Of a stretch of 64,000 nt of DNA, positions 3,959 to 38,099 are shown piece after piece. Every line of letters starts with the position of its first letter. The first letter of the stretch is position 1. Source of the stretch: Nageia nagi. Its lineage: Eukaryota; Plantae; Pinophyta. A program made the translations under genes and the position numbers. The DNA is taken from positions 165,540,001 through 165,604,000 of the forward strand of contig JBITNC010000001.1 of the NCBI GenBank assembly GCA_050084985.1, read 5' to 3'. The notes below the pieces were generated by a model that saw nothing but the letters and a program-made list of their open reading frames with translations, was not told the DNA's origin and searched no databases.

Positions 3959-5568
3959 ATGGTATCAAAGCCAAGATCTTGCCATCCTGTTGGGTTAGAT
4001 CTTGGAAAGTTTTTCATTTGCTGAAGAGGGGAATTCGAAGAAGATTATTTGGAGTTGATTCTAAAAGGAGTTTGAAGGAGATCTCTTTGTCCTGTTGGAG
4101 AGAAGTTGCTGAATAGATCTTGTAGTCCTACTAGAAGATTTTGAAGAGGTGAAGAAAACCTGACATCACATCACAATGGTATTATCCTGGAGTTAAAGTG
4201 GTATTGAGAGAAGTGAAGGATTGAGGAGATATGGAGGTAAAGAGAGCATTTCGACATCTGGATTGAGTTTGTTTGGACACTAGGAGGCTGACGTTGAGTT
4301 GTGGACATCATATTTGTTGGATCTAGACACTTGGAAGCCTATGTTGGAGGTCTAGGAGATTGGATCTCACCTTATAGCAGTTCGTTGGACCTAGTTTGAT
4401 CACATTTTCCGGAATGCAAGGCTCTTAAGGAGGTCTTCTAGCTTGGTGAGTAATTATTTTCAGAATTTTGCATCTTTTCCATTAAATTCAAGGTTCGTTT
4501 TGCTTGGATCTGAGTTTTAAGGAGGAAAAAGGGAGTTCGTTTTGAGCTGAGGAGGCCTAGATCTGAGGTAATTGACATTGCATGAGGATCATCTAGCCAT
4601 TTTGGAGCTGAATTTGGTTTTTGAGGCCATTTGGAGGATCATTTGGCTTATAGGAGTGTCAAATTGAAAAATTTGACACATTTTTACCTTGATATCTACA
4701 TAATGGAGGCATACGAAGAAATGTTGGTCCTTAGGAAGGCTTAATTTGCTATGGATCCGAGAAATTTGGTCATTGGAGCTTGGACATTTGGCATTTTGGT
4801 GGACATTATTCATATTTTGTATCAGTTCCAATGATTACAGGCATTTGTGTGTGAACGTTGAGCCTAAAGGAGGAATAGTTAGAATCAAAGTTGATTTTTA
4901 GGCCCATAATGCATAGGAATGATTAATTTGGCACCTAGACTGGATCATCCCACCGTGGAAGGAATTAAAATTCAGGTTTGAGTAATTTTAAGTATGCAAT
5001 TTAAACTTCAAGCTTGGACTAAGGAAGAAAAATAAATTTATTTAGAAAATTAAAATTTAATTTGAAAAGCAAATTAAATTAGGAGTGATAAGGTATTTTA
5101 TTTTGTGTTTGAAAATTTGAATTTTGGAGGGAAAGCAAGATGCAAATGTGAAAAGCAAAATTCAAATATTTTTAAGACTATATAACCAAACGTTGGAGTA
5201 AAAGGAAAGCATACCAATTTTGAAGAGCAAAAATTTGAAATTTGAGTGTAGAGGCAATTCGTTTGGAAATTGAGGAGCTTGGAGGTAAACGTTGAGCATC
5301 AAGATAGCTAGGAAACCTGCGTTTAGCATCTTAGTGACTGGAAGGCATGTACTGAACACCTAAGAGGCAATTAAGCACCAAAGATCAGTCGTGGTTCTTG
5401 AAAGCAAATTATCAGGCTTGAGCTAGTTTGTTGGGTCCAAGGAGACAGAATATTGAGCTTCAAGAAGATGTTCAAAACAAATTTCGACCTCAAAATCCAT
5501 CTGAGAACAATTCGTCCATTAAAAGAGAGCAATTCAATTAATAAGTAGAAAATTCTAGCCTTATCTTC

Positions 5569-6700
5569 ATGGCAACCTCTAACTCTATGAGGAACAAAGG
5601 AGACCAAATTCCAATTCCACTGGAGTTCAATGTCCTATTCCAAGATTACTCCTCACTTCCTCAAAATTACAAAGGAACTCACATATTTCGGGATTTACTA
5701 GAATACTTGGGATTCAACATTAAAGGAGAAGCAATTTCCTCAACATCATCCGAGCGTGTTAAAGCAGAGAGAGCTCCAAGGTCTACAGATAGAAAACTGA
5801 AAAAGGATATATGGTTAGGAAATGCTGAAAGATTTACTACCAACAATACAGGGTGGAACATAAACGAAGGACACCAGACTTACTTCCATTGTAAGGCACC
5901 ATGGGAGACGAACCATCTTTGCAAACACCCATATTTTCCCTTTCACACAGAAGTAGGAGGGTGAAGTAAAAAGCAGAAGACTAACTACCCAAATCCATGT
6001 ATTTCTTTCCACCACAGAACCAATCGGAAATTGGAGAACATGATCAAAATGATGAAACAAATAGCAGTCAAAATGAGCGAGATGGAAGCACCTCCAAAGG
6101 AAATTAAGGACGAACCACATGTCATACCTTCTCACCAAATGATGGCTCTGGATTGTGTTGTGCAGGAATATCAAGCAAAAACCAAAGCTTTCAAAGAAAT
6201 AGTCCCTTTCCCTACTTACTGGAAAAGAAAAAACAAAATGAGGTTCTAGAAGACTTGCTGATTTGCCAGAAGAACCAGGTAATACTCCAAGATTACGAAA
6301 TGGAGTTTGATAAAAAAAGGAGAGATCATGCCACAAGGTTTCCAAAGGCAAGGACAACCGAAATGCAAGATATTTTTGAACCATGCCACATCAAGTCCTT
6401 GAAGAATCTTGTTGAGGACTAAGGCCTCACAAAAGATAACCATCAAAAAGAGTACACATCAATCAAAATGGAAAAGATGGTATGGCAGAAAAATAAATTT
6501 GTTGATGAAGGGCTACCTAAGGAACCAAAGTTTGTAGACTCAAAACATGTTCCATGGACAGAAGATGAAGTTAAGCCAGAGTTTGTTGATTCTAGCTTCG
6601 CCACAAAGACCAGCTATGAGGAAGACAAAGAAGAGGATCATGAGGACTTTGTTGCAGCTAATGATGTTCCGAATTACTTAGGGGCAAGCAATTTGGGAGG
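5569..6700 (+). pseudogene. gag: Internally deleted gag remnant plus unknown C-terminal region
   Basis: PIPLEFNVLFQDYSSLP..FRDLLEYLG resembles SSPLELNKHHRDYNLL..FNRYLELLG in the gag at ~21.0 kb. YFHCKAPWETNHLC is a degenerate zinc knuckle resembling CFHCKKKWEPGHCC at ~20.2 kb. Confidence 0.55.
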
Positions 6701-6889
6701 GCGGAATTGTAATGTCCCCATTTTTATGGTGTTTTCCCCATTTCACCTCTAATAAATGGAAACATTAGATTAGGAGTATTTTTATTTAAATTTAGCAATT
6801 TAGTGGATTTTTAGCTCAATTATTGTAAGTTCCACTTGAAGAGTAATTAATTACTCCAATTATGGGACGTTGGGCCTATTTTAGCTAGG

Positions 6890-9800
6890 GGACTTAGTTA
6901 ATTGTTGCAAGGTATTTTCTCCTCCAAGGTTGATCACACAGTTTTACAAAGACACACTTGCATCTTTTTGGAGAGGTGTGACCACCACCTTTTGCATGAA
7001 AATTGGTTGACACATGTTCATTGACCATCCTCTCATCCTATAGCATGGTGACACCTGTCACGTCCCAATTATAAAAGCCTTGCAATAGTCATAACTTTGC
7101 ATTGATCATTTCAAATGAATATGGTCACATGATTTTCAGGAGATAAGATTTCATCTTTTGAAGGTGGTGCACTCATTAAGTTGGAAGCCTTAGCCAATGT
7201 TAGTCAAGTCAATTTACCTTATCATCCGATCGCATGGCTTCTAGAAGTTACTTGTGTATCTTTGTTTTAAGGTGCACCTCACATGAGCATTAAAAGAGTT
7301 AAGCCTTGTGTTAAGTAACCCTTGGGGGGGCACACTTAAATGCATAATAGAGTTTAGTTTCTTCTCATTAAGTCGTCCATTGTTTCCGTTTACATGTCAT
7401 CCCTCCATTTTGTCCTAGCCATGTTCCATAGAGTCAACTTTCCCCACCATCTCACCTGGTCGTACCATCCATTCAAGTTGCAAAGTTAACATCTAAATTG
7501 GGTGCGACCAAAGACTTTTGAGCATTAATTCAAGTTTCCATATTAAGTTGGGTCCCACAAGATGGCTAAGGGAGACATATGCATGCACATTGTATTAATT
7601 GATTAAAGCACAAATTCTAGATGTTGTATGCATCAAGGAAGGTCAACCATCTTTCGTCGTGAACATTAAATTCCGAATTTGTCTACATTAGTACATCACC
7701 TTCATCGTCTTAACCGCAAGTATACAGGCTTGCCAGGCACCGTACATCTCATTATCCCACTTGCATCACTCCCTATTGCGTTTATCAGTCAGTCCAATCA
7801 TCCACTAACTTGGTTTGCCTTTGCAAGTTTAAGATGTCAAAGAGCAATTCCAGGTTGAGAAAGACTTGAAAGCTCCAGCTAGCTAGACTGACTGAGCTAA
7901 GTAAAATAGAGTTTGCTAAGGAAAATCCCGAGAATCCATTGGAGGCCAAGTTCAAAAATAACCTTTTGAAAATCCAAGACACTTATTGGTCTTACACAAA
8001 TCCTAGTCGAACGTTACAATCTATTAGCGGGCTGGAGAAAAATCAAGTGCTTAATGAAGTGATTTGCACTGTTGGATTGGCTACTGCCACCCTATTCCTG
8101 TTTGCTACATCTTTTCCTGAACTGTGTTGTGAAGTAGGCAAGCATGCCAACTTCAAAGACTACGCCCTTTATGACACCAATGGCAACAAGATCCTCGATT
8201 TCTCTCCTGAAGGTATTGATGAAGCTTTCAAATGGAGTGGCAAAGGGGTCATCTACACTAAAAGAGACTCCTTGGATTACTATCAAAAGTCTCAACAAGA
8301 TAGGGATCTTATCCCAGACTAGCTCGAAAATGAAAGCAAGGAGTTCACCAAAAATAAGTTGATCAATGCAAAGAGGCAGCATTTCTATCCCACCATCTTG
8401 AAAATCATCAATATGTTGTCTCAGGTCACTGGTAAGGAGGACGACCTCAAGTTCAAAAAAGAATTCACTGGTTTCATTGCAATAATCAGGAATAGGCAAA
8501 AGATCAAGTGAAGTAAGGTGATCAGTGACTCCCTTCTTCAGCAGTTGGCTCATATTGGCACATCCAAGAGATTTTAAATGAATTCTTATCTAGTTTATCT
8601 CATCATCCACGACAAGAATAGAAGATCGGCACATGCAACCATGGATATTTTGAACAATCCTACAAAGCATGTATGGAGAACCTATCCCAAATGGTGGTTG
8701 GAATCTAGATGGGAGAATTATGCCATGAGAAATGATGGATGGGAATATCAGCTCTACAAGGAGATCAAAGGCAGGCAAATGGTGAAAAAGATATTTGATT
8801 ATACTGTGGAAGCCATCAGGGGGCATGCGGATTTCTTCTTGGAAGACCTTGCACATACATACATTCAGGTCTATGGCTCTGATATCAAGCCTTATCTTCT
8901 GCAGGCAATTGTTATTCATGTATGAGAATGTATGGAAGAAGAAGGATGCCAACGTGAATCTCCCTATTTTCATCGGGGAGTACACTTGTTCTGCCTGTCA
9001 GGAAGCCAAAGAAATGAAAAATGTATTGTCTTATTATCACTTTGGTGAGGAATAGGCAACCTCCCACTGTGAACCCCAAGGAAGAATCTAAGCCTTCTAT
9101 AGGCAAGCTTTCAGAAACCTAGTTACTTATGAGCACCGACCTCTAGGTGACAAGGAGAGATATCGGAACAAAAGGGAAGAAAAACAAATTCAATAGGTGC
9201 ATCAATTACTAGTAGCCGAGGGCCGAATCCATAGGAGAATCCAAAGTTTGAATAAGCCTCAAATGGCTTTAGCTAAGAAATCTACCTCCCAACAACAGTA
9301 AGAAGGCGCCAAGGGAGAACAAGCAAACATGCTACCTTGGGAGGCTCTAGACCAAAAATCCATTCTGTCATCAAGGAGATTACTAGAGATGTCCAAGTCA
9401 TGGCAGAAACGGGGTATCCTGACTTCCCATTTCAGCAACTCAAGGATGCTACCCCAAAGGACGTCCCCATGGTGTCAATAATGCCAATTAGAGCTGAGAA
9501 TCCCTTGGCTTGATGCCTGCAGAAGACCATGTAGAAATCGAGTTCTCTGAGCCAATTGAGACAAAATTCCCATACGGAAGATCAAAATATTCCTGTTGCA
9601 AACCAACCTAGAGAGCCTAACTCACCTCACTATTCAAGTTCTTCAGATTCTGAGACATCTTTTGAATCTTTTGGCTCATTCGAGTCTAGTTCAAGTGAAG
9701 AAGGAGAAGATACTAAAAGGGAACATAAGGATGATAAAGACTCGCAGCTTGACACAGAAGACACCTAGATGGTAGACATTGAAGGCGAGTCTAAGGCTGA

Positions 9801-14900: not shown

Positions 14901-15144
14901 GTTAGCATATTGATTATGACTCTTATGTTTACATTATGTTATTATGATGTATGATGATATTGTATTTCAAGGACTTTGTTATTTTTTTGATACATACATG
15001 ATATGGGACTTTCTTATGTTATGATTATTTGATGTGTATGTTTTTAATTTATGTATGTATTTAGCCTTGTTACTACGTTTATGATATGATAAATGCATTT
15101 GATTTATGTATATGTTTAATTTCATTATCATGATATTTATGGTG

Positions 15145-16785
15145 ATTGTCTATTGATAGAGTAGATGTATATGATCTGATTTAATTTCATGTATGGGTTT
15201 ATAATGAATGTATGGGTTTAATGTACATGGTTATTTATATTTGATGATTTTGGATAATGGTTTGTCATATATAAGATTTATGATTGATGATGATAATTAC
15301 AATTGATATGTAAATATTTATATGATGATATGAAATTATTTTAATAATTAATTAATTAGTAATTAATTATGAAACATCATTTAGACATTTAAAGATATGA
15401 ATCCTTTTAAATGATGTATAGACAACATTCTAGTTTAAAAAATTTGAAATCAAATATCATCATTTTTTGAACTTGCCTATTTTTATAAACATTTTGTAGA
15501 TAGGAATAAGACTTATCGCAAATGAAATATAGGTTGCTGGAAAGAACAATTACTCATTCTTTTTTCCAAAAATGTGAAAGCACCTCGAATTTAACAACCC
15601 GTAAGACAAGTGGATGGTTAGGTATGAGATAAACAAGATGTGACAAATGTGTGTAAATAAAGAATAGGTGTTTCTATATAGGATCTATTGAGTTCTTAGA
15701 GATATAAACTAATTAATTCACCAAAGAATAATAAATATAAATGTGATGTTAATCAAGATGTACTATTGCATAGTATGAAATGAAGGTGATTGTATATTGA
15801 TAGAGTAGATGTATATGATCTGATTTAATTTCATGTCTTGGTTTATAATGAATGTTAGTGGATATTACTTTCTAAAGTACATGGTTATTTATATTTGATG
15901 ATTTTGGATAACGGTTTTGTAACTTTTGTTATATATAAGATTTATGATTGGTGATGATAATTACATTTGATGTGTAAGCATTTATATGATGATATGGAAT
16001 GATTTAAATAATTAATTAATTAGTAATTAATTTAGTGTAAATGTATAAAACATCATTTAGACATATTAAGATATAAATCCTTTTAAATGATGTATGGACA
16101 ACATTTTATTTTAAAATTTTCAAAATCAGATATCATCATTTTCCGAACTTGGCTATTTTTATAAACATTTTGTAAATAAGAATGACTTATCACAAATGAA
16201 ATGTAGGTTGATGGTAATGAATGTAATAAGAAGAACATTGACTTCCATTTCAAAAGGAAGAACAATTGCTTTTTCTTGATCCTAGAGAATAATAGAAGCT
16301 ATATAATTTAACAATGTTCTAAGGAGGGGAAATGAATGAAATTTGGTAGGGAAAGAACACTAACTTCCAATTTGATGGGAAGAACAAATTCTTATTCTCA
16401 ATCCCAAAAAATGATGGAAGCTATAAAATCTAAGAATGTTCTAGGGTTGACTCATGTTAATTTACAAGGACCAGTTTCTTGCTCAATCTTGTATATAAGA
16501 AAATAAGCAAGAGGTTTTAACAACAGTAGTGTTGGTTTCCATATTGATGGGAAGAACAATTACTCATTCTTTTTCCAAAAAATGTGGAAGCACCTCGAAT
16601 TTAACAACCCATAAGACAAGTGGATGGTTGGGTATGGGATAAACAAGGTGTAACAAATGTACAAATATAGGTAATGTATGTAAGTAAAGAATAGGTGTGT
16701 ATATACAAGATGTATTGAGTACTTAGATACACTAATTAATTCATCAAGGCATTAATAAATATAAATGTGATGTTAATTAAATGAA
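15145..16785. repeat. Imperfect tandem duplication (~640-bp unit); the second copy is expanded by ~120-bp subrepeats
   Basis: TTGATAGAGTAGATGTATATGATCTGATTTAATTTCATG..AAATATAAATGTGATGTTAAT starts at ~15153 and ~15798. GAAGAACAA..CT..TTCT units recur at 16230-16570. Confidence 0.85.
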
Positions 16786-17495
16786 GGTATGGGATAACAA
16801 CGAAATGTAATGACCAAAATATTCAAGTTGACTTTATTAACCAATTCTTATTAGATTTTCTCAGCTTAAGATGATATGAAACCTTAGGAGTGGCATTGGA
16901 GCATCTTGGAGACTTTCAGCTTTCAACATATTCAAGCAATTCTTCTTCTTGCAAATATGAGTTAGGGATTTGCCCTTCTTTTCCTTCTTTGGCCTAGGGA
17001 TACGCCCAACAACCATAGAAGTTTGCACTTGAATAATTGTGAGATATTTTGGACTTCTTACCTTATATTTTGGATGCCCTAGCACTTGTTACAAAAAGTT
17101 ATAGTCTTGTTACAAAATTGCAACCATATTATCTTGCATATTTTAAGATTTTGGTTACATATTTTATTCTTTGTATGATAGGCACTTAAACGAATGGTTC
17201 TCTTGTCTCATTAATGTGTTTTGATGATCGTGATACTGTTGTTACCAAATCAGATTTTTGTTACAAATACTAAAGGCTAAAAGTTATATGATTATTTGGA
17301 TTTGAAGTTAAATATTGAAGTATTACAGATCTGAGTTTATGCTCTAATTTGTTGGAAAAATATTTGGGATATTTCAATGGTATCAAAGCTAATTGTCTTC
17401 TAGCCTATGAAGGAATGATTCAACTATATACCTAGGGGAATACCTAGGGTTTGTGCTTCAATTTTGTTGAAGTTAATACCCAAGGTTTTTGGATC

Positions 17496-17808
17496 ATGAC
17501 ATCATTGGGAGGAAGCGAGTTGGTCGAAAGGCTTACTAATGTAGAAGGCAAACTTGGACTTATATTTCGACGAAAAAATGCCCTCCTCACATTAGGAGAA
17601 ATAGAAGATTGTTTGCACATGATGGATCCATCACATTCTCAAGTAGCTATGACTTATGAGGTGATATCCTTGGGCAAGCCTAGATGGTTGAGACACACTA
17701 ATATGCAGGTAAGAATCATGGTTCTTTTTAGAGTGAGATTTTAAGAATTTCAACACCTAAAGCACTTTATGATGATGACACGTTGAAATAATAATTCAGC
17801 TATTAATT
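17496..17808 (+). pseudogene. PDS5: Captured PDS5 (sister chromatid cohesion protein) N-terminus, part 1
   Basis: ELVERLTNVEGKL..KNALLTLGEIEDCLHMMDPS..SLGKPRWLRHTNMQVRIMV/SEILRISTPKALYDDDTLK/IIQLLI matches the plant PDS5 pattern LKEVGSKL..KDALVKLL...CLAELDQS..KPELLKHQDRDVKLLV..EITRITAPEAPYSDDVLKDIFQLI. Two frameshifts. Confidence 0.85.
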
Positions 17809-20800
17809 TGTGACGATTTAAAATCACTCTCAATACAAACAACTCTAACTATGCAACTTAAACCCTTGACAAATAAAGCTAGCACACCTACGTTGGGCCC
17901 CTAGGGCACCCCTCCACCCCACAATGCAGATGTGAGCCTCCCAAGGCCTCCACACAACCCCTACACCTTGACGTTAGCCCTTTAGGACATAGTAACACTT
18001 GGCACCTCAACGAATGCCTCACAGATATGAACACAACACAATGGAGCTTCCAACACCAGTATACAAGAGACAACACATACACATCAATGAACAACACGAT
18101 GTATTTAATTATGGAATGGAGGTGGAATACAATGAGGATCTCAACATCCAAATCTAGGGTTCCAAACCCTTGTACAAGCCGAACACCACAGGAAAGACTA
18201 ACTCCCTCAGACTCTGAACCCTCTCCTGCAAAGGAGCCTCCTCGAACCCTGGCTAACCACTAAAGGTAGAAGCTCGCCCTTAGAATACCACCAGATGGTA
18301 AGTCATAGAGTGCCAGGCTCCCAACCTTGTCACCCCTTTGGACACTGCCTAGGAAGAATGCTCAACACCGCCAAGACTTGCAAGCCCGATCGGGTTCAAT
18401 GTAATATAAGTATAATCAATAGTTAACCTCGTCATGGAGCTCCATCCTCAATATATAGCCTCCCGTGTCTATCCACCATGCCTCGATATCATCCCAAGCC
18501 AAGTCTATTCCAACGTTGGGGTCAACAGGTCAACCATGCCAACGTGGAGTCATATTGACTTAGTATGTTGTGGGGGTCCCATGGGCCTAGAACATGGGGG
18601 TCATATAGGCCCTCAAGGCTGATGTGGGGTTTGATGGGCCTCTCAAGGGTGACGTGGGGTCTAGGTGACCTCATAAGCTAGCGTGGCGTATGTGGGGCCC
18701 TCCCAACACTACTATGCTCCTCCATGCATTCTGGCCTACGCAAGACTCATACCTATCTAGGGATTCCCACAATCCAGGATAACTGAATACAAACTAACAC
18801 AACACTACTCAAGGGGAGACGTCCCATTATTGGGCTCATAATGGGGTCCACAGACCATAAGCTCTTGCTTGAGTTACACATGTACAACATGACAATGAAC
18901 AAACACTAGATTACAAAGTGACCATGAAACAATTTGTCAACGGTCCAAATGGGACATCACAAAGCCTCCCCTCTCGAATTGCTTGCCCTCAAGCAATGGT
19001 AGGAGATAGCTATGCACCATCTTCCAAGAATCCCTTGGTGTCTTCAACCGTAGCACACCTCTTTGGGAAACCATCCCTATCTCAAATCCCTTTGTATGTA
19101 ATGGGTCTTCAGCGTTGGATAACTCAATCATCTCTGAACTCATGAAGCATCCATGACCACCTCTCCTCAATATATATTCATGGATGAATCTCTTCAGCCA
19201 TGGACCTGAGTGTACTCCCACACTTAGTTGCACCTGCAATGTCCTGCAAAAGATGATTATCAACACAAAATGTATTAGACCTAGGCCCCTCTCAGGATTG
19301 ATGCTGATCCCCTCATTGAGTAATCTCCCAATCTGCAACGTGGGGTTTCAGAACTCTCGGATAACATGCATAGGCACTCCTGCCTCCCCAAGGTTCAACG
19401 TGGAATTCCCTCCTTGGTACCCAACAGAGCTCCCTCCAGTGTCAGCATATCCAACGTGGAGTCCTAATCTCCTTGGACACCCAATGTGACATCCCCGGAT
19501 GGCCTCCCTCCCAACATGAGGCTCCAACCTCCCTAGCTACCAAACATGGTACTCCAACCTTCCTAGCCCTATCCAAGCTCAACGAGGTCCTCCTGGTATC
19601 ATCCTATCCCGGCTCCACAAATTCTAGCCAGTTGTTGGTTATCTGCATGTCCTCCTCTTACAGCCCCTATAGTGTGTACTCCACTCCATCCATCTCAAAC
19701 CTCATAGTAAGGCTTTGGTAGTTAGTGTGAATGTCACCCACCTCGAACAACCACTATAACCCTAAAATGACATGCGGGTGCCCCATGAGTGGATACAGGT
19801 ATAAGTTCCCCCTTACCACACAACCTTGTAGCTTAATCCCCACTCTCTCCACAACCTGATCCACCAATGTCAACTTGCCATTAGCATTCAAAACTCGGAA
19901 GCCCTCAAAACCCTTGGTCTTCAAGTCCTTCCTCTCTACGAAATTGATGTCAATAAAATTGTGTGATGCCCTCGAATCTATCATCACCATGACATCCTAA
20001 CCGCAAGCTTGACCAATCAGCTTCAGCATTAGAACTTCTTTACCCCATGAAGTGAAGCTACCATGCTACCCAATGTGCCCTCTGCATGCAGCAACTACGA
20101 GTCCTCCTCCTCCTCATTTAGGTCCAACTTTGACTCTTCGAAGTTATCCTCAGGAGGCACCTCGATGTGGTGTATTTGTCCTTTACCTATGCAACAATGT
20201 CCTGGCTCCCACTTCTTCTTGCAATGGAAGCACTTACCCTCTTGTCTTAGCTTCTTCCTAGCAGTAGCATCCAATTGATCCGATCCAGGTATGGGGGTTG
20301 CCTTGGCCTTGCTAGGCCCTTCCCACATCCGTCGACTTGGTGGTGCCTTGTTGGCCGATCCTCCCCCAAGGGATTTCATAGTAGGCTCCAAGTCATATGT
20401 CGCTCGAATGGCATCATCTAAGGTCATGGGATATGAAACCTTGACCATCCCCTCAACGGTTCGACCAACCCCTCAATGAACATGAATGTCAATCTCTCCT
20501 CAGGAATGTCATGGATCATTATAGCCAGCTTTTGAAATTCCATCACAAACTCATCCATTGTCTCTTTCTGCCTCAAAGAGTTCAGATCTCGGAAGTAGTC
20601 ATTCTGCTTCTTCCGATCGAACGTCTTCACCAACCTCCTAATGAACTCCTCAAACGTGGTGATGTGAGCATAGCCTTGACTCACCATGCCATGCTGCCAC
20701 CACTCCAATGCATGTCCTTCCAGATGTAGAGATGCAAAATTGATGGCTTCCTCCATCATGCTAGGGTTTAAAACGAAGTATGTCTGCAATTGGTGCACCC

Positions 20801-23145
20801 AAGCTCTTGCCTTCATCTTCTTGGCGTCAAACATGGGCACTTGCATCTTACCAATCTTGTGTTGTAGCTCTCTTTTTTCGTCCCACTACCCTCCTGACTG
20901 ACATTGGCCATGTGAGCCACCCTTCAACCCTAGTAGCTCTAGATACCTATTGAAATTGATGTCTCGCCTCACATCCGGATGCAACAGGTTGTAATCTCTA
21001 TGATGCTTGTTCAATTCTAGCGGACTCGACACCCTTGCCCTCGAGTCCTCTCCTCCTTTAGACACAAACATGGGCTTGTTCGATCTAGGAATGATCGGTT
21101 GATCATCCCTTCCTCCAACGTAGGCCTCCAAGTAGCGCTTGAGAGGGGGGCTTTCCTACTGAGGCATACGTTGTGACTAGGATCTCCGGAATTGTGGTAC
21201 GAATTGCTCCCTGGATCCTCGGATGGAATCCTTATCCCTCAAGCTCCTAGATCTCCTCAACGAATGCTCACCATATGTCTGATCTCCCTCCGAAGACTCT
21301 TCGGAGTCATTCTCATCCAGACATGGGGGTGGGGTGGCTTCTTTGGCATGACATGGGGTGGCTTCTTTGGCATGACGTGGGGTCCTAAAACCCTCATTTC
21401 CCTGGCGTGACCCCTCTTGGCCTTCATCATGCTAACGTGGGCCTTCTTGGCCTCTACTATCACCTTGTGCGGCTCAAAAACCCCTCTAGGAATGGAGTAG
21501 ATCTGGATCTTCATTATCCTCCCCTCGTGGACCTACACCCTCGTCCTTGGTCCTTTGTCCATGCCTTCTCCTATTTAAGTCATGTCAGGAAGGTTCTGGA
21601 TCATTTTGGACATGGCGCCTTATTCTCAGCTCTTCTCTTCCTTGTCGTCTCTGTCGATCTCCTTCCTCTTCTTCGCCCCAATACCGATCCATTCTTTGCT
21701 CCAAGGATCGCATGGTTCCTATCATGCTGTGCAACACTAAGATAAAAGCCCTTAACTCTTGTTTGGGTGTGCCATCCTTATTTCTCCTCCTCTCAATTAG
21801 GGGATTCTCCAATGCAGCTCCCTCACATTCCCTCTCTGAGATCTCTGTCTCCTCTTTAATCCAATGTCTAGGCCCTTCTTCTTGGCAACCATCTTCGAAC
21901 CTCCCTCCCTTCTTGGCGGAAGAAATCTCTCTTACTGGATCTCGTGTAATAGCGGTGAACCTTGGGTCTCATACAATAGGCTAGCAAGATCTAGGCTCTG
22001 ATACCACTTGTGACTATCTAGAATCACTCTCACTACAAACGACTCCAACTATGCAACTTAAACCCTTGACAAATGAAGCTAAAACACCTAAGTTGGGCCC
22101 CTAGGGCACCCCTATACCCCACAATGCAGATGTGAGCGTCCCATGGCCTCCACGCAACTCCTACACCCTGATGTCAGCCCTTTAAGGCACACAGTAACAC
22201 TTGGCACCTCAACGAATGCCTCACAAATATGAACACAACACAATGGAGCTTCCAACACCAGTATACAAGAGACAACACATACACATCAAGGAACAACACA
22301 ATGATGAGAGACAATGATTTATTTTATTATGGAATGGAGGTGGAATACAATGAGGATCTCAACATCCAGATCTAGGATTCCAAACCATTGTACAAGCCGA
22401 ACACCACAGAAAAGACTAACTCCCTCAAACTTCAAATCCTCTCCTGTGAAGGAGCCTCCTTGAACCCTGGCTAACCATTGAAGGTAGAAGCTCGCCCTCG
22501 GAATACCATCGGATGGACTAGGTGACCCACCTAAGTCGTAGAGTGCTAGGCTTCCAACCCTATCACTCCTTTAAACACTGCCTAGGAAGAATGCTCGACA
22601 CTGCCAAGACTTGCAAGCCTGATCAAGTTCAGTGTAATAGAAGTATAATCAATAGTTAACCTCATCATGGAGCTCCATCCTCAATATATAGCCTCCCATG
22701 TCTATCCACCATGCCTCGATATCATCCCAAGCCAAGTCTATTCCAACGTTGGGGTCAACAGGTTAACTATGCCAACGTGGGAGTCATATTAGCCCAGTAT
22801 GCTAATGTGGGAGTCCCATGGGCCCAGTGTGTCAAACTGGGGGTCATAAAGGCCCTCAAGGCTGACGTGGAGTCTAGGTGGCCTCATAAGCCAACGTGGG
22901 GTATATGGAGCCCTCCCAACACTGCAAGACTCATACCTATCTAGGGATTCCCACAATTCAGGATAACCCAATACAAACTAACACAACACTACTCAAGGGG
23001 AGACATCCCATTACTAGGCTCAAAGTGGGATCCACAAACCATAAGCTCCTGTTTGAGTTGCATATGTATAACAAGACAATGAACAAACACTAGATTACAA
23101 AGTGACCATGACACAATTTGTCAATGGTCCAAATGGGACGTCACA
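17809..23145 (-). mobile_element. Complete gag-protease-only (TR-GAG-like) Gypsy-derived element nested in the PDS5 copy
   Basis: LTRs 17809-18961 and 22009-23145 (TGTGAC..TCACA). 5-bp TSD TAATT (17804-17808 / 23146-23150). PBS (rc GCTCTGATACCA) at 21995-22006, PPT (rc) at 18962-18975. The ~3-kb interior has gag and PR but no RT/RH/IN. Confidence 0.92.
19660..21972 (-). pseudogene. gag: Decayed gag (capsid plus zinc knuckle) and aspartic protease
   Basis: Retrotrans_gag-like ARAWVHQLQTYF..FASLHLEGHALEWW..TFEEF..LRQKETMDEFVMEFQKL..FIEGL. Knuckle CFHCKKKWEPGHCC. Protease VMIDSRASHNFI..HVILGL. Confidence 0.85.
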
Positions 23146-23150
23146 TAATT

Positions 23151-23480
23151 GATAGTTTAAAGAGTTTGGGAGATGTCACAAGTTCTCATTTTTCTAGAAA
23201 GGTTGCCATACTTGAATCATTTGTCAAAACTAGAATAGGCAACATCTTGTTAGATTTGGGCATGAATGAGTTAATTTACGAAATGTTTCATCACTTCATT
23301 GCTTCAGCTAGGAAAAAACATAATGATAATGTTATCTCAGCCATGAGGGACATTATGATTTTGATCATAGATGAAAGTGATTATATTTACCAGCCACTCT
23401 TATCTATGTTAGTGGATGTTTGGAGGCAAGACTTGGTGTCCTCTACTACTACACATGAATTGGTTGGGCTGATGAAGAAC
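23151..23480 (+). pseudogene. PDS5: Captured PDS5 N-terminus, part 2 (resumes after the nested insertion)
   Basis: DSLKSLGDVTSSHFSRKVAILESFVKTRIGNILLDLGMNELIYEMFHHFIASARKKHNDNVISAMRDIMILIIDESDYIYQPLLSML matches plant PDS5 ..FGRRVVILETLAKYRSCVVMLDLECDDLVNEMF..F..ARDDHPESVLSSMQTIM..LLEESED..LL. Confidence 0.9.
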
Positions 23481-26276
23481 AGTTTGAAGAGCTTGGGAAA
23501 GTCATCAATGAGCTAGATAGCATATGGGGCAAGTCAGATTTAGCAAAAGCTGAGAATGAAGGGAAAGTACAGCAGGAAGAATGGCCGCAAAACAAATATA
23601 ACAGTCCCCTGTATGGAATACTTGTTGATGAGGAGTTTTGCAATATCATCTTGGGAGGAAAATATTCGAATGATGGCACACATGGCACTAGGAAAAGTGA
23701 CGATAGGTCTGGTTCTATGTGCAGAACTGCAAATTTGCAAGAAAGGGGTAGTATGTGGAATGAACGCATTGGTTTAGGGACTGTTATGGATCATCTACAA
23801 AGAAGGGCACTTGTTGTTGAATAAAGCAGGTTGGGCATCAATGGAAGGCAGCAATGTAATAAAGGTAACAATCTATTATTTCCTCATTTTGATGAATTCA
23901 GTTTTGACATCATGGTAGATGAGAGGTTCTAGCAAAATCAAATCAAGGCATCAATAGTAGCATTAGGAAGACAATTGGATTGGGACTGTTTTGGGATTGA
24001 TTTCACAAGGGCAGCAGTGAGTCTTTTTTTAAGGTATGTCCACAAGTGTGTTCTATAAGAGGGCATTTGAAAGGGCATTCATTTTTAAGGAAGATTCAAT
24101 TATGGGAGTAATCACAGGACAAAAAAATGGACAGCCATATGGTGTCATCATAGAGGCCACTTTGAATGAAAATGGTAATCATCTCATGTGTACTTGTTTA
24201 GGCATCGATCAGTTAGGAGGAAAAGGTTAATTCTTGAACACATTTGGGATTCATGAAGGTAAAGAAGTTGTGCAAGTATATAAAGAGACAGTCCAAAAGA
24301 TGTTTAAACCGCAGTATAGAGTTGAGGATGTTAGAGATGAAGGCATTTTGTTGTGGTTTTTTGCACTTGAGAGCCTTGGGAGTTTTGAGAAACCTAGTCA
24401 TGGGGTTGAAGGGCCTTTATTCCCTGCTGATATGAACAGCCAAACAATGGCTGTAACACATATGGAGGACTGCCCTTTATGGGCCAAAAATGACTGCTAT
24501 CATTTGGCTGAGAATGGAACGACTAATTGTTTGTTTGACGATAGTTTGATTTCAAAAGCCAATAAGTTCTTGCAGGAACAACAAACTTCAATGAAGACAC
24601 CAAAAAGATGGACCCAAACTTCACAACATCAGCAAGAGAGAGACACAAACCAGCCACCAATTGGAGGAAAGTTCAAAAAGGGAGAAATGTCATTGAATGA
24701 GGTTAAAAATGAAAATAGTAAGATTTCCTCTTTTGGAAAGCATGGTGATTCTTGTTTTGGTCAAGAAACAAAGGGGAACGTTGCCATGATTGCCCCAAAG
24801 AAGGGGCACACTCAGTAGGGCTCTATTTGAAGAGTGCAATGATGATCTTTTAGATGCACACTCAGATTTTGGCTAGGTAGAAACAGCAGTGCTTAGGAAG
24901 GTTCCCTTTGGGGGAAATATTGATTATCTTGTATGCCATATCAACTCAGAGATACATGTTGGAGGAGCAGTCATTATAGGAGAAGACAATGATAATAAGG
25001 GTGCAACGATGGGCCAAGAAAGGACTGATCATTGGTGGATCAAAATAACAATCATTCGTTCACACATAGAGGGTGCGTTGGACACAGAGGACTGACTTTT
25101 GGACAGCAGTACATTGTGCGCTCATACACAGTTTTGACAAGACAATCTTGAGAAAGGAATGCTATCACTTGATTGAATTTTGTGTTTGGGGTTGGCCAAA
25201 CAAGAACTGTTGTATAAGGTATAAATTGAAGACCTCCATGACTGATTTTTGCATTGCAAAGACAGCAGTGGGCTGTCAAAAGGGAAGTTGTGTGTCTTAC
25301 AAAATATTGGGGAAATTGGTGATTGATGAACATTTGGAAAAGACAGTTTGGTATGACCAAAAAAAGGACTGCTATGTGATTGAGATTTGTGCAAAAAGGA
25401 CTGTTAGGGGCTGCCCAAACTATGACAACAGTAAGGGGATTTGTGGGACTGATATTGGCATCAAATGAGCAGTCTTAGAGGGTTGTCCAATGATAAATTT
25501 TGAGACTAAAACTTATGTTTTTGGGGCTTCTTGGGACTGCTGTTGGGAAGATGTAACGTTGGGAATCCTCAAGACTGAGTGTTGCAATAAGAAGACAGTT
25601 TTGGGCTGTAAAGAAATAGTTTGTTCATTGAAGAAGTTTAAGACTAATTTTTACATCTCAGAGACAGTGTTTGGTGATAAGAAGAGGGACTGTTTTTGGG
25701 GAGTCACCTTGGAAACCCTTGGAGCTGATTTGTGCACATTTGAGGTAGATTTTATGGCTATTTTAAAGAGGCAGCAGTAGATGAGCATGGACAGCAGTTG
25801 GGCAACACATGGGATCACACTCCAGTCCCAAAAGGAGATGAAGCCTTGTTTTTTCTAACATTTTTGTTTCCTTTTTGTAGATATTGTAGCTGTATATCTC
25901 ATGACTTCTTGACTTTTTCTTGTGGTGAGGGCAGCCAACTGCTGGTTAAACATTGTGATCATCATTGGTACAGCATATTTGAGACCCTTTCGACAACACT
26001 TGGGACAGGTTTGGTGCACCCAATTGACATCATTTTCACGAGAGATTCAGATCTGATCTTGACTAGTACCTATTTTGGCACATCATTCGATGCTTTGATC
26101 ACCATGAGTGCTAAAACAAAGAAGACTCAGCTTGGGCATGATAGTTTCTTCATCAAGATTGCTTGGAGACTGATTTGGAACCCGGGAATTGAAGATATTG
26201 CCACTTGGATCAGCCAAATTGTATGGAGAGGATACATTCATTGCTTGAGGACAAGCAATTTCGTGAGGGGTGGACT

Positions 26277-27341
26277 CGTGATGTCCCCAAATTTGGCGGC
26301 TTACTCATTCTGGCCACTTGGAGTGGAACGTTCCTCTTTATTGTGATATTCTAGCACTTAGTTCCTCTTCATTGTGATTTTCTAGCACTTAGGAGTATTT
26401 AGTTGTCATTTTGATACTTTTGGCATTGTCACATGCCTTTTGAGATATTTTTGGTGTTGTCACACACCCTTTGATGTAATGGTGTGTAATTTGTACTCCC
26501 AAGATCTCTTAATGATGTAAGAACTTCACCATTGGATATATCTCGTCGATTACATGCGAAACGAGTGGTCACATGACCACTGTGAATCAAAATCGAGCAT
26601 TGGAGGAGGTCGGCCATGATGATGATGTTTTCTCCTTGGACAAAGTCGGCCATGTCATGAAATTATGTATTTTTATGATGTTTGATCACATATAAAGGCA
26701 AAATGAGCACACCATGTCTAGGCATTCTTGGAGAACTTCGATCTTTGATCTTTCGAGTTAGGGTTGTGTCCTTCTCACCCTTCTAAGGTCTAGGGATGCG
26801 CTCGAAACCTTAGGAGTGGCATTGGAGCATCTTGGAGAGCAAATCCACCTAGGGTTTGCATTGAATCTTCTTGGAAACTTTTTGCTTTCAACATATTCAA
26901 GCAATTATTCTTCTTACAAATTTGAGTTAGATATGTGCCCTTCTTTTCTTTTTTTGGCCTAGGGATGCGCCCAACAGCCATAGAAGTCTGCATTTGAAGA
27001 ATTGTGAGATATTTTGGACTTCTTGTCTTCTATTTTGGATGCCCTAGCACTTGTTACAGAATGTTATAGTCTTGTTACAAAATTGCAGCCTTATTATTTT
27101 GCATATTTGAAGATTCTGTTTACATATTTTATTCTTCGTATGATAGGCTCTTAAACGAATGTTTCTCATCTCATTAATGCGTTTTGATGATCGTTATACT
27201 GCTATTACCAAATCAGATTTCTGTTACAAGTATTAAAGGCTGAAAGTTATGTTATTCTTTGGATTTGAAGTTAAATATTGAACTATTGCAGATCTGAATT
27301 TGTGCTCTAATTTGTTGGAAAAGTATTTGGGATATTTCACA
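26277..27341 (+). repeat. 3' LTR of the PDS5-carrying element (~1.07 kb)
   Basis: Follows the PPT; its distal half matches 16878-17376. Confidence 0.85.
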
Positions 27342-27918
27342 TTTACAAGTATTTTGCCTTATTATAATAACACTAAATGACTCTTAGAGTCCAATGTCCC
27401 ATATTGGAGAGCCTTCAAGTGGAACTTACATAGAAAAGGCCCTTTACATTGCCTAAATTATCACAATATTTCCAAATTTACTCTAAAATTAATAAAATAC
27501 TCCTAATTAACTAAGAGATCACAATGAGAATGAACATCCCACTTTCTTGTGCCAGAGTGAGTGAGGCGTCAAATTTGGGAATATTATAGAAACACCTACA
27601 TTGCATGCTTTAATGAAAGTTTCTTTGAAGTAAGGGGAATATGCAATGTGAAAAAGGAGACCACGAACGTGAAATAATTGTTAATAGCATCATTAACTTC
27701 CTCTTTGTCCTGAAATATTTAGCAAATCTATTACAAAAATGAAAGCTTTTATGATTCTTTTTCTTGGTATTGGTGGCTTTCTAAAACTATCTCCTCCAAT
27801 AGTTACTCTTATAGCTGTAGCTCTTTTTATCCCAACTCCAATTACCAATAATTGAAGCATCTATTGGTAAACCTAATACTAGAATCTTAGACTTATTCAC
27901 AAGCTTAGTTGTTTCAAC

Positions 27919-32208: not shown

Positions 32209-35200
32209 TGTTACAATGCTACAATTATGAAAAAGGGAAATATTGCAGAAATGAAACGAATATTGATTTGAAACAGGAAAATGACAACTATCTATTGGAA
32301 ATAATAGAGCATGCACTGGTAAATAGAACACGAAATAGCATCAAATAGCAGATAAGCATAGGATTTTACTGAATAGTAACAGAATCACATGTTGCTTCGA
32401 GGGGGCTACCTCCTTACAACTCCAAAGGCGAAAAATAATATTCAAGATACCTTTCTCCACACACTTCCATCTATTTATATTAAAATAACCCTAACCCTAA
32501 TAGTAATGCAAAATCGGGCCCCGCCCTTAAAATCACAATATTATGGTTTACAATATAGGCCGACAATTTAATAAAATACTAATACTAACACTAAAATGTT
32601 AGGATGTGGGATCCTAACATGCCACCCCTCTTGGGATGAAGCTTTGTCCTCAAAACTTGAAGTGTGGAAATTGTTGCTGCTGATGATGAAGGATTTCCCA
32701 TGTTGCATCTTCTAGTGCCATGCCTTGCCACTGCACAAGGACTTCTGTGATGGAGCGATTACGAAGCTGTCGTGAGCGTTGATCCAGAACTGCCTCAAGT
32801 ACCACTACCATTGATCCATCCTCTACCAACTCAGGTAATTGTGTCTGAACCCGAACCTCTGATCCAACCACTTTCTTGAGGCAAGAGACACGAAACACTG
32901 GGTGAATCTTGGAAGAAGCAAGAAGCTCTAATTTGTATGCAGCTGGGCCAATGCGTTGTAACACCTTATAAGGACCATAAAACTTTGGGGCCAATTTTTG
33001 AGGGCCTTTTATTTTTAAAGATTTCTGGCAATAAGGTGGCAACCTCAGAAAGACCATGTCATCTACCTGGAACTCTCTTTCCACATGTTGCTGATCAGCC
33101 TATTGTTTCATACGATGTTGGGCTATCTGAAGGTTATCCTTAAGCAAACGAAGAATATCATCCCGAGTAACTAAAGCTAAGTCAACTGCCTAAACTTTAT
33201 TGGTACCTGCAACATACGAGGTGATTGTTGGTGGAGCTTGACCATTCATTGCTTCATAAGGGGTCATCTTGCTAGCAGAATGATAAGATGTATTATACCA
33301 CCATTCAGCCAAAGGAAGCCATCGTTTCCAAGCATTTGTTGACAATTTCAATCTGGCCATCAGTTTATGGGTGATATGCTGAGCTCATGTTTAATTGGGT
33401 GCCTTGCAGTTTAAAAAGCTCTTGCCAAAAATGACTTGTAAAAGTGGGATCACAATCAGTGACAATCATCTCTAGCATGCCATGTAGTTTGAAAATTGTA
33501 TCCAGGAATAATTGTGCCACTATTACTGCTTTGTAGGGATGAGCCAATGAACCAAAATGAGCATTGGATAACCGATTGACCACCACTACAATTGAGATAT
33601 CGGTCCATGAACGGGTAGGTATGGGAAGAGGTTGAAGGAGTCCCGGAGTACCCACTATCTCACCCCTTTGTCGTTGACACACATCACAAGCTGCCACAAA
33701 CTGCTTGATATCTAATTTCATACCTATCCAATAGAATGACCGTGCCACTCATTTATAAGTTTTCAAAAATCCTTCATGTCCTGATGTAGGTGTGGAATGC
33801 AATTCGGCAAGTATTTCTGATTTACATTTTGAAGGAGACAGTAACAAAATTCGACCTTTGAATCTCAAAATACCATCATGCCATGTATGGTGTGGTTTAC
33901 CCGTGGGGTCTGGAGTGATCTGTTTTAGCAATTCTTGGGTGGAACTATCCTCTACCCACTCTTGTTTAACTTTATCCAACCATTGAGGAATAGGAGATGA
34001 AAGAGCTTGCAATGCTACTTGATCTTCAAATTTTCTGGACAAAGCATCAGCAACCACATTCCCCTTACCTTTACGATATACTATCTCATAATCATACCCC
34101 AGTAGTTTGGTTACCCATTTTTGTTGCTCATGCTTAGAAATGCGTTGCTCAATGAAAAATTTCAAATTGTGATGATCTGTGAGGATGATGAAATGGCGAC
34201 CAATGAGATATGGTCTCCAACGTTGAACTGCATGAATGATAGCAAGAATTTCTTTTTCATAAGTGGATTTACCCAAATTTTTTCTAGAGAGTGCTCTACT
34301 AATGAATGCCAAGGGACGCCCTTCCTGCATTAATACTGCCCCGATTCCTACTCCACAAGCATCACTTTCTATCATAAAGGTTTTAGTAAAATCTGGCATT
34401 GCTAATACCGTGGTGGTACACATCACCTCTTTGAGCTTAAGGAAAGCTGCCTCAGCTTGAGGGGACCATTGGAATGCATTCTTTTTCAACAACATGGTTA
34501 AAGGTGTTGGAATCTTGCCATAATCCTTCATAAATTTCCTATAATAGCCTATCAACTCCAAGAATCCTCGAAGACTTTTCAAAGATGTAGGAATAGACCA
34601 GTTTTGCATGTCAGTAATCTTTTGTGGATCCACCTTAACTCCCTTTTCGGATATAACATGGCCTAAGTAGTTAATTTCCCTCTTGCCGAATGAACATTTT
34701 GATTTTTTTGCATATAGCCGGTGTTCCTTCAAGATTTGTAAGGTTTGGTCAACATATGTCATATGTTCTTGCCATGTCTTACTGTAGATCAAGATATCAT
34801 CAAAGAAAACTAAAATGAATTTCCTGAGGAACGGACGAAACACCTAATTCATTAAACTTTGAAATGTGGATGGAGCATTTGTGAGGCCAAAAGGCATGAT
34901 CAGGAACTCATAATGGCCCTCATGGATGCGAAATGGAGTTTTTGGTATATCCTCCTCCTTGAGGCAGATTTGGTGATACCCAAATCGCAGGTCCAGCTTG
35001 GAAAAATATCTTGCCTCATGCAGTTCATCCAATAATTCATCAATGACCGAGATGGGAAATTTGTCCTTGATGGTAATTTTGTGGAGGGCCCTAAAATCCA
35101 CACACATACGCCAAGAACCATCTTTCTTACAAACCAATATAACTGGAGAAGAGTATGGGCTTACGCTATGTCGGATTACTCCTGCATCCAACAGTTTCTT

Positions 35201-38099
35201 AACCAATTTTTCAATTCCGTTTGTCTGTAAACAAGGATACCGATAAGGATGAATGTTTGGTGGGTGACTTCCCGGCACCAACTAGATAGCATGATCATGT
35301 GATCGCTTAGGTGGTAAGCCCCTTAGTTCCTCAAATGTACTTGAATGCTTAAGATGGGCTACAGATCCTTAAGCTCTGTGATTTTTGATTCGAAGATTGA
35401 TAAAAAGTACAACTATGCCAGCATCCCTTTTCCAATTTTTTGTAGGATCTTTTCCATGCGATGTGAGCTCACAATTTGTATAGATCCACCTTGTAATCCC
35501 CTAAGAGTATGCTCTTGTTCATCTATTTTGAAGATCATCCATAGCTCTGCAAAATTCCACTGTACGGTGCCCAAAGTCTTCAGCCATTGTACCTCCAAAA
35601 CTATATCACATCCTCCAAGTGGTAAAGCGTACATGTCGCTTTTCAAAATATAGTGGTCCATGCTCAGTTTAACATTGTCACATGTGCCTTTACATGCTAT
35701 TTTTCTTCCATTACCAACCATAACCTCAATTATTTGTAGGGTGGATGTAACAGTCAGCAACCTTAGCCACTCGTGGATCAATGAAATTATGAGTACTTCC
35801 CGTGTCCAACAATATTATGAGAGGGAGTTTTTTTAAGAACCCTTTGACCTTCATAGTTTGAAGGGTGGTAATTCTTACCAATGCATTGTAAGAGATAACT
35901 GGGGCCTCCTCATCTGGAATTTTCTCTGTAGCCTCTTTAGGTGCACTCTCATATTCCTCCTCACTAGAAGCATCAGCATCAAGCAAATATAACTTTTGTT
36001 GTGTATAATGATGACCACGAACAAATTTCTCATCACAATTATAGCACAAGCCTTTCTTTCGACGCTCTTCCATTTCTTCCCACGTCAACTTCTTAGTTTG
36101 CATTGTGCAATTCAATGGTGGGGCAATTGTGTTATTAGAGAAATGGGTAATATTATGTGTTTTGGTGAATGGAGGTCTTGCATTTTGTCGATGAGCACTG
36201 GCTTTATCTTCAGTGAGCTTTGCCAAGGCAATAGCATCCATCATAGTTTTGGGATTAATCATTTTGACCTCAGGTTTAATTTCTTCCTTTAAGCCACTGA
36301 TAAAACAACTTGTGAAAAATGCATCGTCCAACCCCTCTATGTGATTTGCCAATTTCTCAAACTGATTTTGGTATTCCTTGACTGTTGTAGTTTGACGTAA
36401 CTAGGTCAATGCCCTTGTGAAGTTTTCATAGTCACTAGGACCAAAACGGATCAATAATTGTTGAGTGAATTCATCCCACGAAGGAGCAGGATGCGTTTTG
36501 GAGTACCACTGGTGCCACTGGAGAGCCTTACGGTCCAAATGAAAAGATGCCATGCGCACTTTCAAATCCTTTGGGATTTGGTTCAATGTGAAATATTGTC
36601 CAACTTTGTAAATCCAACCATTGGGATTATCTCCATCAAATCGAGGAAAATCCAATTTGGTTTTGTGGGGAAGAATGAACCCACTTTGTTGGCTCTGAAA
36701 GTTATGATGATACCCTTGTGGATTTCCTGACTGCCCTGATTGCTGTGAACTGGATGCATTATTGGTATAATTGAGACTTAGTTGAACAATGTCACATTTA
36801 CTATCAAGGGTTTGTATGTGTATGTACTTGTCGAATTTCTGCTCTGATTGTACTGGTAAGTGTATCTGCCATTTGTTGGATCATAGTTTGAAATGTCATC
36901 ATGGTAGGATCAGCTTGTGCTGCTGTTTGGGATCTTGTTTCAAGTGCCATTTCTGAAAACTGCTATTTTTAGAAACTATTATTTCTAGAAGTGCCCGAAA
37001 AAGTGTATGGGTGTAATATATCAAAACAATTAGCTCAAAAAGACGATCACAATGGACTAGGTCTCCCGATGATGATTTTCGGACCCCCAGACTCTACTGT
37101 GGATTTGTCTGCTCTTGTTAAAAACTACTGAAACGGAACAGATTTTTAGTTATTTTGCTCTGAAGTTTTTGCTGCCTCTGAACTGCTATTTTTGGTGGCT
37201 CTGAAAAACTGCATGTAAATTCTGCTTCCCAAATCAAGGTTTTTTGTGTGAAGGAACGAATCTAGGGTAAGGATTATTTGCTCTGTAGGCTTGTCTAAAC
37301 AACCCTCCTATCCAACTTTCGCAAGGAAAAAGGTTGCAGAGATGACTTCTGTGACAAGTAACTTTCCAGCAGCACTTGCTGGTTGACTACAGTTTACAAA
37401 CAGTCGACACAACTTCCTACCTAGTTTTCGTTTATAACCTAGATAGTCTCCGATATACCTTTCAGTACGTGGAGTCCAATTCCGTGTAGGGTTCTGTCTG
37501 AGGCCTAGGTATTGGTGCAGAGTGTTTTGCACCTCACTTCACACACAACTTTATGGGCAAATATGCTTAGCCAAAAACGACAGACCCTCCTGGATATTTT
37601 AAAACCCCCGATACAGGGTTTCTAGCCTAGCCCTCTAATTTTTTTTTCCTGCAATAGAATGGCCCAGGAAAGAGCTCTGATACCAGATGTTACAATGCTA
37701 CAATTATGAAAAAAGGGAAATATTGCAGAAATGAAATGAATATTGATTTGAAACAGGAAAATGACAACTATCTATTGGAAATAACAAAGCATGCACTGGT
37801 AAATAGAATACGAAATAGCATCAAATAGTAGATAAGGATAGGATTTTACTGAATAGTAACAGAATCACATGCCTCTTCGAGGGGGCTACCTCCTTACAAC
37901 TCCAAAGGCGAAAAATAATGTTCAAGATACCTTTCTCCACACACTTCCATTTATTTATATTAAACTAACCCTAACCCTAAAAGAAATGCAAAATCGGGCC
38001 CCGCCCTTACGATCACAATATTATGGTTTACAATATAGGCCAACAATTTAATAAAATACTAATACTAACACTAAAATGTTAGGATGTGGGATCCTAACA
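32209..38099 (-). mobile_element. Full-length Ty3/Gypsy chromovirus (Reina-like), decayed
   Basis: LTRs 32209-32619 and 37688-38099 (411/412 bp, about 17 substitutions plus 1 indel by eye). TSD GATAA (32204-32208 / 38100-38104). iMet PBS 37674-37685, PPT ~32620-32635. Order gag-PR-RT-RH-IN-chromodomain, 5.9 kb. Confidence 0.95.
32650..36950 (-). pseudogene. pol: gag-pol polyprotein with C-terminal chromodomain (stops and frameshifts)
   Basis: gag DFPRFDGDNPNGW and CYNCDEKFVRGH; PR LLDTGSTHNFI; [30 protein letters not shown]; RH ESDAC..GAVLMQ..TDHHNL; IN HSTPTSGH..CDVCQ..SSAYHP; GPY motif; chromodomain VLVQWQGMALEDATWE. Confidence 0.95.

Follow-up and report, generated by a model that had tools for sequence, protein, structure and literature searches.

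We analyzed a 64-kb stretch of Nageia nagi contig JBITNC010000001.1 (hereafter the window; positions are counted from its first nucleotide) in which two matching long terminal repeats (LTRs) enclose a sequence related to the N-terminal part of PDS5. We favor, with moderate confidence, the explanation that this structure is a dead, non-autonomous LTR retrotransposon in which an intronless, captured PDS5 N-terminal open reading frame (ORF) occupies the first-ORF position. The cargo would represent the 5′ portion of a spliced mRNA of PDS5 type, including ~56 nt of 5′ untranslated region (UTR), the native start, and the first 215–225 codons, which would specify the N-terminal HEAT/ARM domain. It would sit 50 nt past the primer-binding site (PBS), where gag normally starts. 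A second retroelement has since inserted into the cargo. Coordinates of the outer element, its cargo, and the nested element are collected in Table 1.

Table 1. Features of the outer element, its PDS5-like cargo, and the nested element (window positions; TSD, target-site duplication).
Feature	Position	Strand	Description
5′ LTR of outer element	16877..17376	+	TGAAA...TTTCA termini; ~40 nt present close to the start of the 3′ LTR are absent
PBS	17378..17389	+	TGGTATCAAAGC; 1 mismatch to the initiator-Met tRNA PBS
Leader	17440..17495	+	common to contig L002, ~80% identical; contains ACCTAGGGTTT with telo-box-like TAGGGTTT
PDS5-like piece A	17496..17729	+	native Met to ~codon 78; frameshift caused by loss of 4 nt near 17715
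PDS5-like piece B	17732..17788	+	SEILRISTPKALYDDDTLK; spans the APEAP-loop site of PDS5B; second frameshift, from loss of 1 nt near 17784
PDS5-like piece C0	17788..17808	+	IIIQLLI; ends in the TAATT target-site copy 17804-17808
Nested-element TSD	17804-17808 and 23146-23150		TAATT on both sides
Nested gypsy-like element	17809..23145	-	gag, CCHC knuckle, and protease motif only
PDS5-like piece C	23151..23491	+	PF20168 profile positions 83-171; end of L002 homology
Remaining outer interior	23492..26802	+	no gag, pol, or other domain recognizable; 26077-26802 high-copy
3′ LTR of outer element	26803..27339	+	direct-repeat/BLAST match to the 5′ LTR

A PDS5-like fragment without introns

Profile searches confirmed that the cargo belongs to PDS5, as the original prediction had proposed. 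Pfam profile PF20168 (PDS5) matched 23151-23510 with E=2.9e-16 and 59 bits (cut-off 27) over profile positions 83-171, and an exhaustive phmmer search over 1.8 billion representatives returned 360 matches, the matched residues falling at ~111-203 in long PDS5 proteins. The cargo is 38–47% identical to gymnosperm and angiosperm PDS5 over ~95–105 residues, and its nearest named relatives come from Cryptomeria, Ginkgo, and Taxus. An independent homologue, the 192-residue protein P0001 described below, aligned with residues 54-176 of human PDS5B (PDB 5HDT), APEAP loop included (E=1.2e-8). This alignment supports the earlier assignment of TPKAL in the window to the APEAP-loop position.

The similarity to PDS5 moves through three reading frames, running from 17496, then through 17732-17788 and 17788-17808, and resuming at 23151. 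The pieces were searched separately, and codon pairs were pooled for counting only. A gap-free alignment pairs Ginkgo PDS5 residues 89-107 with 17732-17788 and residues 114-208 with 23148-23432, and the six residues between 107 and 114 pair with 17789-17808. Given this gap-free collinear alignment, the PDS5 piece contains no intron-sized interruption. The multi-exon comparison underlying the word "intronless" is drawn from the Arabidopsis literature and not from the host genome: PDS5 genes of Arabidopsis consist of multiple exons, and T-DNA insertions have been reported in exons 7 and 14 (PMC4664637). The proposal of ~210 contiguous codons free of introns thus holds with respect to collinearity and the lack of an intron-sized gap, but these codons do not form a single open frame. 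Relative to the homologous metagenome contig L002, the window copy has suffered two frameshifting deletions (of 4 nt and 1 nt; Table 1), of which only the one near 17784 had been marked previously. With these deletions and the nested insertion, the window copy is dead, in agreement with the earlier assessment.

The fragment comprises ~215 codons. It begins at a native Met, the ATG at 17496, and opens MTSLGG...VRIMV; homology ends near codon 225, and neither a full HEAT-repeat body nor the Tudor domain of plant PDS5 is present. A Tudor-like motif (WPQNK..YGILVD, YSNDG) in 23486-23821 was considered and rejected, as it was non-significant against ~150 PDS5 proteins. No poly(A) was found at or beyond 23491. 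The PDS5 unit, leader included, begins 50 nt downstream of the PBS and lies in sense orientation. The leader is probably a captured 5′ UTR. Telo-box-like motifs such as the one it contains are typical of plant gene 5′ regions. Between the window (17440-17495) and L002 (961-1032), the leader is better conserved (~80%) than the coding part, and CTAAGGTTTTTGG-like motifs recur upstream in L002.

Structure of the outer element

Direct-repeat and BLAST searches revealed one direct-repeat pair of ~500 bp bracketing the region. Its two members, which correspond to the predicted LTRs, share 90.4% identity across 498 aligned nt, with a Kimura two-parameter distance (K2P) of 0.104. The ~40 extra nt of the 3′ LTR lie between two TCTTGGA(G/A)A repeats, and a 35-nt stretch of this LTR (26804-26838) is identical to the start of the 5′ LTR. 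The PBS, TGGTATCAAAGC, begins 1 base beyond the end of the 5′ LTR (...TTTCA), and the ATG follows 106 nt after it, so that the predicted order of initiator-Met PBS and start codon is recovered. Five initiator-Met PBS sites of this kind were observed in the 64-kb window, compared with 0.17 expected by chance; two of the others are parts of other elements. The identical one-mismatch variant TGGTATCAAAGC occurs again at 3960-3971 on the plus strand, where the surrounding sequence showed no resemblance to the studied element in either LTR or PDS5.

The outer interior was said to contain no recognizable gag or pol, and our searches agree: none was detected by Pfam on the interior ORFs or by tblastn with reverse transcriptase (RT) and integrase (IN) queries. 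A look-alike of a CCHC gag-knuckle remnant at 24753-24806 (peptide CFGQETKGNVAMIAPKK) was set aside, being without Pfam support.

An independent copy of the PDS5 unit

P0001 is encoded on L001 and L002, two identical, plant-like JGI metagenome contigs from different records. A metagenome scan with this single protein matched L001 and L002 alone, which thus represent one locus. L002 aligns to 17440-17808 and 23146-23491 of the window with 70–74% identity and is unbroken across the nested-insertion site. Because L002 is uninterrupted at this position, both the nested insertion and its TSD, each predicted earlier, are confirmed. Homology between L002 and the window extends from 56 nt upstream of the ATG to ~codon 225 and has sharp edges on both sides. 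L002 itself carries a 16-nt deletion.

Across 200 comparable codons (600 sites), the two copies show 144 differences, yet neither contains a nonsense codon. Neutral simulation with the observed spectrum predicted 4–5 stops, with P(0)=0.007–0.012. Given this absence of nonsense codons, the frame was probably kept open for most of the divergence, whether it resided in a host gene or in master copies of the element, and indels later disabled the copies in the window and L002.

The nested element has LTRs of ~1.15 kb each (17809-18961 and 22008-23145; K2P 0.119) and a perfect initiator-Met PBS at 21995-22006 on the minus strand. RT and IN were not found in it.

A clade of short PDS5-N proteins

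We built a tree of 79 N-terminal PDS5 segments (112 alignment columns, quick search mode). All 15 short proteins (77–235 aa), among them the window piece, P0001, and a Cryptomeria japonica hypothetical protein, fall into one clade (Shimodaira–Hasegawa-like approximate likelihood ratio test, SH-aLRT, 98). The other 64 segments are from canonical PDS5 (Ginkgo, Taxus, and angiosperms, of ~900-aa and ~1600–1900-aa types) and stand apart. Most members of this short N-terminal (PDS5-N) clade come from short, low-coverage contigs. Word-index protein searches yielded 1–3 relatives, scans of viral and genome contigs with the family alignment gave no matches, and a protein atlas search returned generic HEAT-like look-alikes only.

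Contigs of four sequencing runs were mapped on 21500-27450, with depth expressed as summed contig depth, which is not copy number. At 23291-23489, within the PDS5 unit, it reached 108, 48, 712, and 405 in the four runs, compared with 0–20 in the next bin and 0–44 in interior bins up to ~25.7 kb. The contig pile-up on the PDS5 unit is thus 15–50× that on the neighboring interior, indicating that this unit is repeated in the genome. One run contained a contig 100% identical to the outer interior and thus probably derives from the same species. The LTRs of the nested element reached summed depths in the thousands in 4/4 runs, and gag-protease-only gypsy derivatives of its type seem to be a very abundant family.

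A proposed retroelement capture and its alternatives

The capture itself could have occurred by an RT template switch between a co-packaged element RNA and a host mRNA, with a switch back at the 5′ end of the host mRNA, and copies could then have spread in trans through proteins of autonomous elements. The cargo lineage would accordingly consist of repeated, old, and diversified short PDS5-N ORFs that stayed open during much of their divergence. The window copy would have been disabled later by its two small deletions and the nested gag-protease element, possibly with loss of part of the 5′ LTR.

Several observations weigh against this explanation, some of them concerning the outer element itself. 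The predicted polypurine tract (PPT) was not recovered: no purine-rich run lies directly 5′ of 26803, where the sequence reads ...CTAGGGATGCGCTC. The 5-bp flanks are unlike (TGATA vs CATTT), so that no outer TSD is present, and the 3′ LTR opens with CG, not TG, whereas the 5′ LTR has TG...CA. Without a TSD or a clear PPT, and with this CG start, the outer element may be a recombinant or truncated structure. Other observations concern the comparison with L002. Smith-Waterman alignment of its flanks with those of the window (LTR and PBS region; interior) gave z<1 against dinucleotide shuffles. A BLAST extension to 17281 had looked suggestive of LTR homology and was ruled out by these same shuffles. 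Within 9.2 kb, L002 has no LTR pair. The only verifiable relative shares the PDS5 unit, with no detectable sharing of the LTR or the interior. Moreover, since the PDS5 unit is more abundant than the outer interior, many of its copies either lie in other sequence contexts or come from families too diverged to align. Finally, Ka/Ks between the window and L002 was 0.52–0.69 depending on method, and wrong-frame controls gave 0.57–0.95; given this overlap, we dropped Ka/Ks as proof of selection.

Some of these points can be qualified. At a divergence such as that between L002 and the window, the LTRs of related families are normally unalignable, and L002 is therefore no evidence for or against an LTR context. 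Its only PBS-like match, TGGTATGAGATC, is on the right strand and 238 nt upstream of the ATG, with an expectation of 0.57 for the whole contig and both strands. With regard to the 3′ end of the outer element, 26752-26801 is a diverged copy (74%) of the LTR segment 26921-26970, and summed contig depth is high from ~26.1 kb onward; both features suggest that the original LTR may have been longer and that the 5′ LTR may be truncated. A candidate PPT, GTGAGGGGTGGA at 26263-26274, suits only such a longer LTR. The segment directly upstream of the 3′ LTR (26077-26802) shows high contig depth, with a peak at 26475-26673, and holds 31-nt tandem duplications (26330-26391 and 26413-26474). Possibly this segment is the absent 5′ portion of an originally longer LTR. 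The proposal that a non-autonomous LTR family amplified the cargo survives in part: the clade and the contig pile-up show that the PDS5 piece is not a one-off, but this particular LTR family as the agent is not upheld by L002, which shares the PDS5 unit alone.

The most serious alternative is chance juxtaposition, in which an independently amplified PDS5-N retrocopy or pseudogene inserted into an unrelated LTR element that was already gutted, or reached this position through rearrangement, so that PDS5 is not heritable cargo of an LTR family. Such an origin would account for the restriction of L002-window sharing to the PDS5 unit and its 56-nt leader, with sharp ends, for a contig depth on the PDS5 unit far above that of the adjoining interior, and for an outer element with neither TSD nor PPT. 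However, a random landing in a 4-kb interior would produce sense placement 50 nt past the PBS in only ~1% of cases, and a PBS-like motif is present upstream in L002 too. The unit is also 5′-complete, 3′-truncated, and without poly(A), unlike retrocopies made by long interspersed nuclear elements (LINEs), and for these reasons it is not a LINE-type retrocopy. We consider chance juxtaposition unlikely.

A second alternative is that the short PDS5-N ORFs form an ordinary gymnosperm host family of N-terminal-only, single-exon paralogues, and that the window contains one of its pseudogenes amid retroelement debris. The monophyly of the short ORFs, which include an annotated Cryptomeria protein, would be expected of such a family, as would a frame free of stops over a long divergence and a conserved leader with a telo-box-like motif. 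It is harder to reconcile with the contig pile-up in low-coverage runs, which points to many copies, or with the damage seen in copies whose DNA can be read (the 16-nt deletion in P0001/L002 and the frameshifts in the window), and a PBS lies adjacent at two loci. On balance, we find a host family improbable.

We are equally doubtful that the PDS5-N ORF is, or was, a working retroelement gene, serving as a candidate dominant-negative decoy (for WAPL or kleisin, or through the role of PDS5C/RDM15 in RNA-directed DNA methylation, RdDM) or as a source of small interfering RNA (siRNA) against host PDS5. The frame did stay open through 144 substitutions, the clade is old and diversified, and the ORF occupies the first position under the LTR promoter. 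PDS5C/RDM15 carries an ARM domain at its N-terminus, functions in RdDM, and binds NRPE3B, a subunit of Pol V (PMC8184781); truncated homologues of the PDS5C type originated within seed plants (bioRxiv 10.1101/2025.05.08.652912). Given this role of PDS5C in RdDM, a decoy or siRNA function would be plausible. Nevertheless, Ka/Ks cannot be distinguished from that of wrong-frame controls, all copies whose DNA was inspected are broken, and a sequencing-run search found no RNA run containing the stretch; gene fragments captured by plant transposable elements are, besides, usually inert. The boldest extension, that a retroelement lineage found in several gymnosperm groups swapped gag for a maintained PDS5 HEAT/ARM ORF without the Tudor reader, which would antagonize cohesin unloading partners or PDS5C/RDM15-dependent RdDM in a dominant-negative manner and so serve as an anti-silencing or chromatin decoy, strikes us as a long shot.

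Other elements in the window and in L002

Just upstream of the outer element, 15141-16744 contains several direct repeats with a spacing of ~650–1030 bp and 82–96% identity, which suggests a tandemly repeated block. Gypsy-type RT/RNase H/integrase regions are present at 33300-35350 (minus strand) and 49700-52540 (plus strand). The former includes a 364-aa open stretch whose best named match is plant-like and filed under Nostoc sp. DedSLP05, a cycad symbiont; this entry is probably plant DNA in a cyanobiont assembly. In L002, downstream of the PDS5-N copy, 6184-6926 holds ORFs that by eye resemble a hAT-type transposase fragment.

Comparison with known systems and significance

Our literature search found no paper tying PDS5 to retrotransposon capture. 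The kind of event is already known from Bs1-like capture; the cargo is new. Like the element we favor here, Bs1 of maize and the gene-capturing LTR retrotransposons of grasses are LTR-bounded, lack pol, carry intronless, mRNA-derived host fragments, and are mobilized in trans. Unlike in Bs1, the cargo is a single PDS5 N-terminal domain that directly follows the PBS and retains its native start codon, the host is a gymnosperm, no gag remnant was found, and the cargo lineage is old and diversified instead of a recent, low-copy capture. LARD and TR-GAG elements resemble the outer element in having LTRs, a PBS, and a mostly non-coding interior (~4 kb here) without pol. LARDs differ in lacking a host ORF and usually in having much longer LTRs, and TR-GAG elements keep gag, in contrast to the host-derived first ORF here.

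Processed pseudogenes generated by LINEs are likewise intronless copies of host mRNAs. In addition to being complete at the 5′ end, truncated at the 3′ end, and without poly(A), the cargo differs from them in having no flanking TSD of its own and in being embedded past a PBS. Plant PDS5 proteins, especially the truncated PDS5C/RDM15 type, share the homologous N-terminal HEAT/ARM domain with its APEAP-loop position. The cargo is distinguished from them by its length of only ~215–225 residues, its lack of a disordered middle and a Tudor domain, its separate clade, the absence of introns, and its repetition. VANC of VANDAL21, which is transposon-encoded and counteracts host silencing, would offer a likeness only if the anti-silencing reading were true; the two are unrelated in sequence, and VANC is not a captured host domain.

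Plant LTR retrotransposons are well known to capture gene fragments, mostly without consequence. If the window holds only one decayed capture, the finding is a matter of routine annotation, yet it would explain the spurious short "PDS5" proteins called from gymnosperm data by ORF callers and gene predictors. Its importance would grow if transposons carried the short PDS5-N clade across gymnosperms and selection maintained it. PDS5C/RDM15-type proteins act in transposon silencing and in cohesin control. In that event, carriage of their protein-interaction domain by a transposon would make a candidate case of host-transposon conflict, fought by decoy protein or by siRNA cross-talk.

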